Assembly (NCBI RefSeq): GCF_011386835.1
Contig: NC_088793.1
Coordinates: 103,540,001-103,604,000, forward strand
DNA: 64,000 bases
Direction: 5' to 3'
From: Chrysemys picta bellii
Lineage: Eukaryota
Positions 9,193 through 60,400 of this stretch are shown piece after piece (within the stretch, counting starts at the first letter, position 1; each line of letters opens with the position of its first letter). The notes under the pieces are model-generated. The model worked only from the letters and a program-made list of their open reading frames with translations. It did not search any database and had not been told where the DNA came from. Position numbers and translations under genes: made by a program.

Positions 9193-9386
9193 AAAAACAA
9201 CAAGGAGTCTGGTGGCACCTTAAAGACTAACAGATTTATTTGGGCATAAGCTTTTATTGGTAAAAAACCTCACTTCTTCAGATGCATGAAAGCTTATGCT
9301 CAAATAAATCTGTTAGTCTTTAAGGTGCCACCAGACTCCTTGTTGTTTGTGTGGATACAGACTAACACGGCTATCTCCTGATACTT
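9193..9386. mobile_element. Penelope-like retroelement end, inverted-repeat (hairpin) insertion
   Basis: Arms aaacaacaaggagtctggtggcacc...gcataagctt and their reverse complement; tail cagactaacacggct; 13-bp TSD TCTCTCAATCCTT (9180-9192, 9387-9399). Confidence 0.75.
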
Positions 9387-9661
9387 TCTCTCAATCCTTG
9401 GCTCTTCTAGTCAAATAACATGTATACTTTGATCAAGGAGCTAGGCCCTTATGGGGCTTGGCTAAGCACTTAAACAGTGAACATCTAGTAAATAATATAT
9501 TTTACTGAGAGAGAGAAAGGCATTGTCTAAGCACAGGAGTTGGACCCTGAAACTCCTGAATTCTAGTTTGGCTCATTTAAAAAATAAATTGTGTGGACTA
9601 CAGGGCTTATAATGGAGAAGTGTAAAATAAGAAATGGCAGTGGAGAAGCAAGGGGAAAGGG

Positions 9662-57400: not shown

Positions 57401-60400
57401 AGAGATCCTTGCATCTTATCCCATACATTCTTATGGTGAAAATTCCCACTGGTAGTTGATTTCAAAGTGCAATGACCTGAGAGAGCTGATCTGTATTTGG
57501 AATTGTTAAAAATCTGTGCTTAAGAAGTATGGGTTAGGAGGCGGAGGGTAGAACACCTTTCTGTGTTACATGCACCATTGAATTATAACAAATTTATTGA
57601 GGACTCTTAGAAATGCTCTATGCTAACAGTTTCCAGTCAACTAACTTTAATTTGAATTATAGAGACAAGGTGGGTGAGGTAATATCTTTTATTGGATTAA
57701 CTTGTTTGGTGAGAGAGACAAGCTTCCAAGCCACACAGAGTTCTTCTTCAGGTCCAGAACTCTGTGTGGCTCAAAAGCTTGTCTCTCTCACCAAAGAAGT
57801 TAATCCAATAAAAGATATTACCTCACCCTCCTTGTCTCTCTAATATTTTGGGACGTACATGGCTACAACAACACTGAATTTGAATTGAAAGTTCTATATG
57901 AAAAAGTCTTTATATGCATGTGTTCCTCTGTAGAACTGATAATGCTATCAAGAACCACTGGAATTCTACAATGCGTCGAAAGGTTGAACAGGAAGGTTAT
58001 CTTCAGGAATCTTCCAAAGCCAACCAGTCATCATTAGCCGCAAGTTTTCAGAAAAACAGTCACTTAATGGGATTTGCTCACACTCCACCTTCTGCACAGC
58101 TTCCAGCAGCCACCCAACCCCCAGTTAACAATGACTACTCCTATTACCACATCTCTGAGCCACAAAATGTAAGCTGCTGAAAACTTTTTGTTGAATATGT
58201 AGATCTGTGATTAAGCTATCTGCATTGAAATTGATGAAGAATGATGTTTTTGTTATCGCTTTAGTGGATGGACTGGAGGAATGAGGGTAAATAAGGAATG
58301 CTGATCTTAGACACTCAGGCCCTGATTCCGCAAGTCTTTTAAGCATGTGCTTAACCTTCAGAACATGCTTATGTTCCATTGAAGTCAATGGGACTTCACA
58401 TGCATAAAGTTAAGCAAGTTCTTTGCAGAACTGGAGTATCATATACTACAGTAATGGGCATACACAACCCTAAAATAGGTAAATCTGCTTTCATACATTT
58501 GTGCTACAGCATTCTAACATCTTAATTTTTAAAAGAAACTAATCAACTATAATGCATATGATATAGCATTTCTTATGGTGGTGAGTATTGCACTTGTTGA
58601 AATTCAACTATACTTGGGCCTGATTCTGGAGTCCATTTTTATGTGACTCTCTCATTGACTTCAGTATTTGTTCTGTAGTAGTTAATTATTACTGTATTTT
58701 AATCCAAATCCTTTTATGCTAATAACTAATATGAAAATTATTGCTACCTTTAAACACAATTGTGTATGGATTGCAGTGGGGTTTTAGATTGTAATAAAAT
58801 GTATCTGCTTCCCATTTGCACTTCAGTTTAAAAACATTTAACAAGCATAACTTTCTTTGAATTATTCATCCATTCTCAGAACTGGTGGGTGCTTCTTATT
58901 TGAATGGCTTTCCTCCTCTAATGCTTAGTGTCGTATTTACTCGTTAAAAGCAGCTCAGTTTTCTTGCACGTTAGAAGAGAGGGGTTTTATGGATTTTAAA
59001 TGTTCAGTGTAAGATGCAGGAGTAGTGCTTGAGTTTAACCCAAACACACACTGCAGCTTGCATAATGGAATTAATAACTTTGAGTGTCTTTTGTGTTTTG
59101 GCGTAGGTCCCTGGTCAAATCCCATATCCAGTAGCACTGCATGTAAATATTGTCAATGTCCCTCAGCCAGCCGCTGCAGCTATTCAGGTAGATAGTTTAA
59201 AGATCATTTCACGAGTCAATTTGTTAAACATTTGATATGGAAGTTAAAATGCAAACTTCTTACCTTGAAAAAACATTTTTAACATTCTGAGTGATGGAGA
59301 GAGAAAATGGGGAAGGGGAGGGAGTTCTGACATAGCTAATAATCAGTTCTTTTGAGGTAAATTTGAAACACATTAGCTGACATTTAGTGTAATGTCTTTC
59401 ACTTTTTCTATTTCAATGTCTGTATTGAAATTCAATAGGGATTTTTACAGTGGAAAACACAATTGACATTTGTTTTACCTCTGAGGCTAATTTGGCTGTG
59501 ATACCACAGGACGGCAAGCCATAAGCATTTTAGTTGCAACATCCAATCAGACCTTTATCTTTTCTTTTCCCTTAACTCTTAATTGCAGAGACACTATAAT
59601 GATGAAGACCCTGAGAAAGAAAAACGAATAAAGGAATTAGAGTTGCTACTAATGTCGACTGAGAATGAACTGAAAGGGCAGCAGGCATTACCAGTAAGAC
59701 TGTCACTGTGTGCTTGGATGGAGGGATAGCAGCTTTACCCCAGTGCTTGTCTTTTTACCTTTTTACTCCCCCTCTGGCTCTGACACTAATCAAGGCTCTA
59801 TATTTCTGTTTTAAAAGAATGAAACATAGCACATATTTAATATGCATTTGCTTTATAAATTTATGTATGTTATGGTACTAAACAATTTGCAGGTATTTTT
59901 ACTTTTGCAAAGTCAGCGGGAGCAAGTTTGGGCTCTACATTTTACCACAAGGGTGATAACACTAAAGTTAACAGAGTAAATCCCACCAGATCTGATATTA
60001 CTGGAGATGTGTGTTTCTGAAAGTGTGCAATGGTTCATGTAATGAAAATGTAGTGCCTGTTCATTAGATTTTTCCTCTCTGTTGCATTCCTTACTTCAGC
60101 TGTGTATTACATACTTTGTAAACTTCAGACTTGGTGCATGTTTGATAATTTGTTTTACTTTTCTGTGAATAATGTTAGAACCTTTAGCTGCATGTGTGCA
60201 ACCTGTGCTGGCTATTACTGAATTCTCACATTTTGTCATGCATAGGTGGTAAAATAGATAAGTAGCTTATTCTATGTAATAATATAGTTAAAGCAAATAA
60301 ACCAAAATCATCCTAGAACATAAGTGATAGCCAGCAGATACTTTTATGAGTAATTTTTTCTGGTTAATAATAAAACGATTGTGTGCATGATGTGTTAGTT

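Follow-up and report, generated by a model that had tools for sequence, protein, structure and literature searches.

The stretch of DNA analysed here (hereafter the window) comprises 64,000 nucleotides (nt) of Chrysemys picta bellii (assembly GCF_011386835.1, NC_088793.1:103,540,001–103,604,000, forward strand) and contains no runs of N. Four inverted repeats lie within it, at 9193–9386, 14336–14608, 41792–42288 and 57659–57876 (hereafter sites 1–4), i.e. where an initial annotation had placed four head-to-head hairpins flanked by target-site duplications. They were found as described there: the inserts are 194, 273, 497 and 218 base pairs (bp) long at sites 1–4, respectively, and are bounded by exact direct repeats of 13, 14, 12 and 10 bp. 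Each insert is a head-to-head pair of short end pieces of a Penelope-like element (PLE) with a minimal type I hammerhead motif. The outer ends of these pieces are fixed, their inner ends vary, filler of local origin lies between the two pieces of one insert and copy number in related genomes is very high. We consider it highly probable (roughly 0.87) that each hairpin is the product of one PLE integration event that left two short end pieces, i.e. solo pseudo-long terminal repeats (pseudo-LTRs), head to head. The hairpins are real, but they are ordinary PLE end pieces of an already published anatomy, and their interpretation is mostly a rediscovery.

Under the explanation that we favour, the PLE endonuclease would cut both strands of an AT-rich target, 10–14 bp apart, and each strand would prime reverse transcription at one of two internal start sites, ~55–61 or ~91–96 nt downstream of the predicted hammerhead cut. 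Because two start sites would be used, one end of the insert would carry a tail of 35–39 nt and the other would not. Each complementary DNA (cDNA) would be ~95–140 nt long and would mostly reach just upstream of the hammerhead, a point that is probably both the 5′ edge of the pseudo-LTR and the 5′ end of the RNA. The polymerase would then switch template, sometimes gaining filler, and copy the other cDNA, which would give an inverted repeat within a target-site duplication. The hammerhead would merely lie between the RNA start and the start sites, and would be neither required for the junction nor define it. Three parts of this scheme are inferred: the order in which the strands are primed, the move of the polymerase to the other cDNA, and the correspondence of the clustered inner ends to the 5′ end of the RNA.

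Structure of the four fold-back insertions

Positions along the arms are counted from the predicted hammerhead cut, which follows GAAAGCUU (GCUU in site 4). Oriented by the motif and aligned, all eight arms fall into a single register: a few upstream bases are followed by the hammerhead-like motif, an AAGCTT that is invariant (8 of 8 arms) and a GTTA.TC block common to all arms, even those of site 4. The tail-less arms end in the same columns, beyond which three copies continue for another 35–39 nt. The two arms of an insert are ~95% identical at site 1, 99% identical at sites 2 and 3, and 93% identical at site 4, chance extension into the flanks having been trimmed. Arms of sites 1–3 share 77–89% mutual identity, and site 4 has no blastn likeness to them. 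The initial annotation had recognized three families on one scaffold; the shared scaffold stands, and the sequences point to two deep families, not three, in which sites 1–3 appear to be subfamilies of one lineage and site 4 is deeply different. No further copies of either family were found in the window by blastn or with the strict motif pattern.

At site 1, the left target-site duplication (9180–9192, 13 bp) is repeated exactly at 9387–9399. The tail-less inverted copy (9193–9287, minus strand) spans +55 to −40 and holds a decayed hammerhead at ~9244–9285 in which G12 is changed to A, while the direct copy (9288–9386, plus strand) begins within the motif at −8 and ends in a 36-nt tail (9351–9386). 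The 14-bp duplication of site 2 (14322–14335, with its exact right copy at 14609–14622) encloses a tail-less inverted copy (14336–14438, minus strand, +55 to −48) that carries the sole fully consensus hammerhead motif (14387–14427), a 32-nt filler (14439–14470), and a direct copy (14471–14608, plus strand, −44 to +94) with one stem II mismatch (14505) in its motif (14478–14518) and a 39-nt tail (14570–14608). The upstream consensus for the inverted copy of site 2 was taken from loose contig ends in relatives.

Site 3 has more parts. Between its exact 12-bp duplications (41780–41791 and 42289–42300) lie, from left to right, (i) a 14-nt piece (41792–41805, minus strand), which is probably the extreme tip of an inverted tail, judged by eye because it partly resembles the site 1 and site 2 tails; (ii) an extra sense fragment of 77 nt (41806–41882, plus strand), the last 45 nt of which duplicate 41980–42024; (iii) a tail-less inverted copy (41883–41985, minus strand) with its motif at 41935–41974 and the core CCGAAGA; and (iv) the longest direct copy (303 nt, 41986–42288, plus strand, −248 to +55), which is also tail-less and has its motif at 42198–42237 and a TATATATA run at 42162–42169. 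The 14-nt piece matches nowhere else in the window, and a search of the window found no local source for 32 unexplained bases at the left of this site. At site 4, exact 10-bp duplications (57649–57658 and 57877–57886) flank a tail-less inverted copy (57659–57756, minus strand, +61 to ~−37) with a decayed motif at 57717–57754 (A13 changed to G) and a direct copy (57757–57876, plus strand) that begins in stem II at ~−24, has G12 changed to A and ends in a 35-nt tail (57842–57876).

Tested for the features of PLE insertions, these sites show a hammerhead in the terminal repeat, a one-sided tail, an inverted 5′-truncated copy and short duplications of variable length (10–14 bp). The duplications contain 62–90% A+T, compared to 59% in the window.

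Outer ends and tails

The outer ends of the arms occupy few positions. Tail-less ends lie at +55, +55, +55, +55 and +61 from the predicted cut, and tailed ends lie at +91, +94 and +96. In all four copies, the inverted arm has its outer end at the tail-less start site. Tails of 36, 39 and 35 nt occur only at the right end of sites 1, 2 and 4, respectively, and share ACA[CT]GGCTAC; the right end of site 3 has no tail.

These positions can be compared with those of PAc, a Poseidon element of Anolis carolinensis that was studied in vitro in 2024. The PAc protein, which favours AT-rich DNA, cuts the two target strands and extends each of them, and reverse transcription begins at two adjacent internal sites that bracket the tail (PMC11167929). 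The PAc start lies 111–118 nt into the open reading frame (ORF) and the hammerhead cut 26 nt into the ORF, which places the start at +85 to +92 (PMC11167929). The outer ends in the window fit this two-start-site geometry closely, with a start ~85–95 nt past the cut and a second site one tail-length upstream, and priming of both strands and AT-rich targets would likewise be common to the two systems. By contrast, no sequence similarity between the two is detectable, and the copies in the window lack an ORF start overlapping stem II, where the ORF of PAc begins. The twin-priming-like origin suggested in the initial annotation finds rough support, and would be better described as priming of the two target strands at the element's two internal start sites with a subsequent template switch (PMC11167929).

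Inner junctions and local filler

All four junctions differ. In site 1, the inverted copy ends at −40 and the direct copy at −8, and in site 4 they end at ~−37 and ~−24, the arms abutting directly in both cases. In site 2, the inner ends at −48 (inverted) and −44 (direct) are separated by the 32-nt filler, and in site 3 those at −47 (or −41; inverted) and −248 (direct) are joined through a 6-nt microhomology (41980–41985). No inner end (0 of 8) coincides with the predicted cut; all lie 8–248 nt upstream of it, so every arm retains sequence that self-cleavage would remove. Five of the eight fall 2–11 nt upstream of the motif.

The site 2 filler is composed of two patches. Its first 16 nt are the reverse complement of 13267–13282 and its next 15 nt, with an overlap of 2 nt, are the reverse complement of 13682–13696. 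These sources lie 1.06 and 0.65 kilobases to the left of site 2, respectively, and are about single copy by contig depth. When the filler was shuffled, any 15-mer match in the window was obtained in 128 of 20000 trials. The site 2 junction was assembled in situ: before it closed, a nascent strand copied DNA of the neighbourhood on two occasions. Because the filler is nearby unique DNA, this junction was not inherited from a hairpin master. The filler is a footprint of template switching, or of snap-back copying, during integration, and in the former case it provides a direct trace of that process at this locus.

Fold-backs in related genomes

The region is contained in 19 DNA runs from seven coded organisms, and contigs of four relatives, ~1.4–1.8% diverged, were aligned on 9100–14700, i.e. 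on sites 1 and 2 only. Between 26,000 and 45,000 contigs per run matched, almost all on hairpins 1 and 2; this depth is not a copy number as such, and the copy number of these sequences in the relatives is very high. Site 1 is present in organisms C and D, where contigs run from its tail into the flank, and site 2 is present in B, C and E, where contigs run from the flanks into its arm and tail. One 1048-nt contig of organism D (run X8) stops aligning at 14321, the base before the duplication; it may mark an empty site 2 and would then date hairpin 2 after one split.

The fixed outer ends recur in these genomes. For each listed outer-end row, 110–200 contigs stop at the outer positions of site 2 and continue into unrelated flanks, and the tail-less outer end of the inverted arm is represented by 145–166 contigs per run in the two runs for which its row was listed. 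The inner junctions fall into 955 classes, the best 15 of which were examined. In most of these 15 classes the arms meet near −40/−40 with 0–4 extra bases; the top class of this kind has 4–21 contigs per run and its near neighbours have ~16–58. The other junctions among the best 15 of 955 either have arms whose ends lie downstream of the cut or share the asymmetry of site 1, and none of the best 15 lies at the predicted cut. In one lesser row, the left arm stops no more than 2 nt from the cut. Insertions in these genomes are, as a rule, fold-backs; they have many junctions, but one point is preferred, which lies a few bases 5′ of stem I.

This preferred point allows a tentative extension of the both-strand scheme, which we hold to be possible rather than probable: the short arms could be complete copies of a defined RNA of ~95–135 nt that extends from an internal start at a pseudo-LTR promoter to the reverse-transcription start sites. 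The RNA start could then lie a few bases upstream of stem I, and run-off cDNAs on both strands, initiated at whichever start site is closer to the RNA 5′ end and connected by an end-to-end template jump, could produce near-perfect palindromes. Hints in this direction are the inner ends just upstream of the motif (five of eight), the −40/−40 class and TATA-like runs. Such runs occur 25–31 nt upstream of the preferred inner end in the long copy of site 3 (42162–42169) and, with the same spacing, in the consensus of longer copies of the site 2 family (relatives' loose ends at 14438). If this extension were true, the inserts would represent a promoter-carrying by-product, similar to a short interspersed nuclear element, that dominates this genome. 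Stem II covariation would then be kept for protein binding or template use and not for cleavage, given that amplification also occurred in a subfamily whose core position 4 is C.

The hammerhead-like motif

Intact copies of the motif consist of a 3–4 bp stem I, CUGAAGA, one unpaired A, a 5–6 bp stem II that opens with a G–C pair, and GAAA, followed by AGCU without a loop, then U and the second strand of stem I. The arm-by-arm alignment reproduces the motif boxes, the stem I swap and the stem II variants as the initial annotation had written them. CYGAAGA with the extra A is present in all six arms that reach that far, and GAAA is intact in five of eight arms (AAAA or GGAA in the remainder). 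Stem I is GCAU/AUGC in sites 1–3 and GAC/GUC in site 4, the G10.1–C11.1 pair of stem II is retained in sites 2 and 3, and the AGCU palindrome is invariant. The core boxes CUGANGA and GAAA, with H17 at the cut, are found in both arms of site 2; site 3 has CCGAAGA, with C replacing U at core position 4 in each arm, as it does in a loose-end consensus from a relative; and in sites 1 and 4 either G12 or A13 has changed, for the most part at CpG. A fully consensus core together with an unbroken stem II is found only in the left arm of site 2.

This is consistent with published descriptions. Minimal hammerheads in PLE pseudo-LTRs have a short stem I and a long stem II and form covarying families, with turtle named among the genomes, and they contain an extra base between 9 and 10.1, a G10.1–C11.1 pair and a palindromic 15.2–16.2 (PMC4209133). 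Pairs of such motifs on opposite strands, 100–700 bp apart, were noted in 2014 (PMC4209133). The stems, the unpaired base, the palindromic AGCU and the opposite-strand pairs of the window are shared with these minimal type I hammerheads (PMC4209133; dimer model in PMC6765202), while the C for U at core position 4 in the site 3 subfamily and the decay of most copies set the window apart.

The strict motif pattern has five matches in the window against 0.035 expected, although the matches are repeat copies and not independent events. In a structure of 10 pairs, 91% of the cells pair, compared to 24–47% in slid controls, and four of the 10 pairs change on both sides. The set comprises five distinct rows, and three of the four double changes come from site 4 alone, the stem II of which was aligned without sequence likeness. 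The initial annotation had argued from covariation to a functional fold; the pairing is present and agrees with the published claim (PMC4209133), but with five rows it is underpowered, and it is suggestive rather than proof of anything by itself.

As a monomer, only the site 3 copy takes the expected shape (−11.1 kcal/mol, z −1.7). Folded as RNA, the whole inserts are predicted to form duplexes of ~65–105 bp with −110 to −242 kcal/mol, compared to ~−8 to −11 kcal/mol for the motif alone. The predicted antisense arm would sequester the motif, and the ribozyme switches envisaged in the initial annotation are implausible because the full-insert duplex is far more stable than the motif fold. The double-stranded RNA proposed alongside them is a real potential if the inserts are transcribed, but the same is true of any inverted repeat.

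No Rfam match was obtained in the window at the gathering score, and an Rfam E-value scan of the whole of hairpin 2 gave only hairpin-driven, microRNA-like noise; the putative assignment to ribozymes follows descriptor features and the literature. A 16-base pattern found 120 loci in metagenome contigs, all of which are chance matches without blastn likeness to any arm and were left unused, and a 33-column pattern had no matches in viral or prokaryotic genome contigs.

Alternative explanations

The rival that survives best retains the same element family and lets the cDNA snap back at the RNA 5′ end and copy itself, with the endonuclease later resolving the product within the tail. We regard this as a doubtful, though serious, alternative. 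Self-priming of this kind was proposed from palindromes at inverted junctions (PMC3846280), the −40/−40 palindromic class with its 0–4 extra bases fits a snap-back, and the inverted local patches at site 2 resemble fold-back copying by a nascent strand. However, a snap-back should put the tail on both arms, and the tail is at one end only in all four copies. The asymmetric arms of sites 1, 3 and 4 would need extra steps, and the Anolis protein extends both strands in vitro (PMC11167929).

Several points, including the published argument for self-priming just cited, weigh against integration by priming on both strands. The symmetric −40/−40 class is unlike a purely random 5′ truncation and needs either a defined RNA 5′ end or some hairpin masters, and the distribution of junctions is that of the best 15 of 955 classes only. 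An autonomous partner would encode a telomerase-like reverse transcriptase together with a GIY-YIG endonuclease; an ORF for a PLE reverse transcriptase/endonuclease is absent from the window, leaving such a partner unseen. Finally, Rfam hammerhead models gave no match at E up to 10 with either hairpin 2 in full or a single site 3 arm, a miss that is expected because the motif has no stem III loop.

The initial annotation had also proposed that the hairpin itself could mobilize as a non-autonomous unit, in which case the transcript of a hairpin master would serve as template and the entire fold-back would be copied and integrated in a single piece. Two observations agree with this: the best-supported junction class in the four relatives is one symmetric palindrome (−40/−40, 0–4 extra bases), and all four PLE insertions in the window are fold-backs. 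Its locus-specific centre nevertheless excludes such an origin for site 2, and a propagating unit is otherwise unsupported and improbable, given four different junctions in the window and 955 junction classes in the relatives. Moreover, a 5′-truncated hairpin RNA would give variable outer ends, whereas the outer end of the inverted arm is fixed, and an RNA in so stable a duplex (−110 to −242 kcal/mol) would serve poorly as a template.

A still smaller chance is left to the idea, likewise raised in the initial annotation, that hammerhead self-cleavage trims the RNA template and that the cut end sets where the arms meet. The motif is close to every junction, and the one lesser row in the relatives whose left arm reaches to 2 nt or less from the cut would suit trimming, but all eight inner ends in the window and all of the best 15 of 955 classes avoid the predicted cut. 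The site 3 subfamily has C at the conserved core position 4 on both arms. In PAc, which needs no hammerhead cleavage to insert, constructs with a dead ribozyme insert equally well in vitro, and no RNA-sequencing reads end at the cut (PMC11167929). With the element ends mapped relative to the cut, the outcome is the one that the initial annotation had itself named as telling against its proposal, i.e. ordinary Penelope inversion.

Miniature inverted-repeat DNA transposons also have terminal inverted repeats and flanking duplications, but this origin has next to no chance and was rejected, since the duplication length varies (10, 12, 13 and 14 bp), the one-sided tail makes the ends asymmetric, the arms are retroelement pseudo-LTR sequence with a PLE hammerhead, and the inner spacers differ among copies.

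Relation to known elements

PLE insertions often consist of an inverted 5′-truncated copy beside a direct one, with a tail of 30–40 bp that is often at one end only (PMC8557442). Rotifer PLEs do likewise: their duplications measure 8–10 bp, palindromes, captured spacers and joins by microhomology are found at their junctions, and solo pseudo-LTRs occur as well (PMC3846280). The copies in Drosophila virilis have inverted terminal repeats of differing size (PMC2377424), and transcription there begins shortly before the motif, at a distance of 46 nt plus an intron (PMC4209133, PMC2377424). Compared with these insertions (D. virilis Penelope, the rotifer Pen families and Naiad; PMC2377424, PMC3846280, PMC8557442), the four sites have the same inverted copy abutting a direct copy, the same one-sided tail, the same short and variable duplications, the same kinds of junction (palindrome, microhomology or filler) and the same location of the hammerhead in the pseudo-LTR. 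They differ in having no ORF between the repeats, in consisting of two solo pseudo-LTRs of ~95–140 nt each (with one arm of 303 nt) and in their very high copy number.

Non-LTR retrozymes of animals (PMC7229834; bioRxiv 10.64898/2026.07.22.740005) resemble the fold-backs in being non-autonomous, in bearing a hammerhead and in deriving from PLE pseudo-LTRs. By contrast, retrozymes are head-to-tail tandem repeats that yield circular RNAs, and the fold-backs are dispersed and head-to-head. No tandem hammerhead-bearing unit was found at the four sites, which contain inverted pairs only.

A further comparison is with L1, for which Ostertag and Kazazian reportedly described twin-priming inversions in 2001. 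Both cases share a second priming on the other target strand, which leads to an inverted part within one duplication-flanked insertion. In L1 the inverted part is more upstream and the internal priming is random, whereas here both arms cover the same 3′ region and would both begin at the element's own start sites, giving a true fold-back.

Since every element of these insertions is already in the PLE literature, their value as a discovery is little. The genomic copies can be read as natural footprints that agree with the in vitro work of 2024 in three respects: two start sites, priming of both strands, and cleavage that does not define the ends.

Annotation hazards and neighbouring features

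Fold-backs of this kind could be mistaken for microRNA genes. The whole site 2 fold-back (14348–14557) has sub-threshold matches to many microRNA-precursor models, up to 77.7 bits with E 2e-14, all below the gathering score. The fold-backs also appear to break short-read contigs at their arms, and are a hazard for assembly as well as annotation, both here and in the related genomes.

A MYB-family gene lies partly within the window, together with its upstream region. Three plus-strand exons (~55330–55400, 55870–56050 and 57933–58170) code for MYB-type DNA-binding repeats and for the stretch that follows them, with motifs such as NHWNSTM and RWHNHLNP. The last of these exons begins near 57933, and hairpin 4 with its duplication (57659–57886) ends ~47 nt before its splice acceptor; the hairpin occupies the zone expected to contain the branch point, and its presence there is evidently tolerated. 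Two further inverted repeats, at 37179–37456 and 24490–24571, are unrelated to the Penelope families; one is rich in G+C and has 68-nt arms that are 81% alike, and the other has 34-nt arms that are 85% alike.

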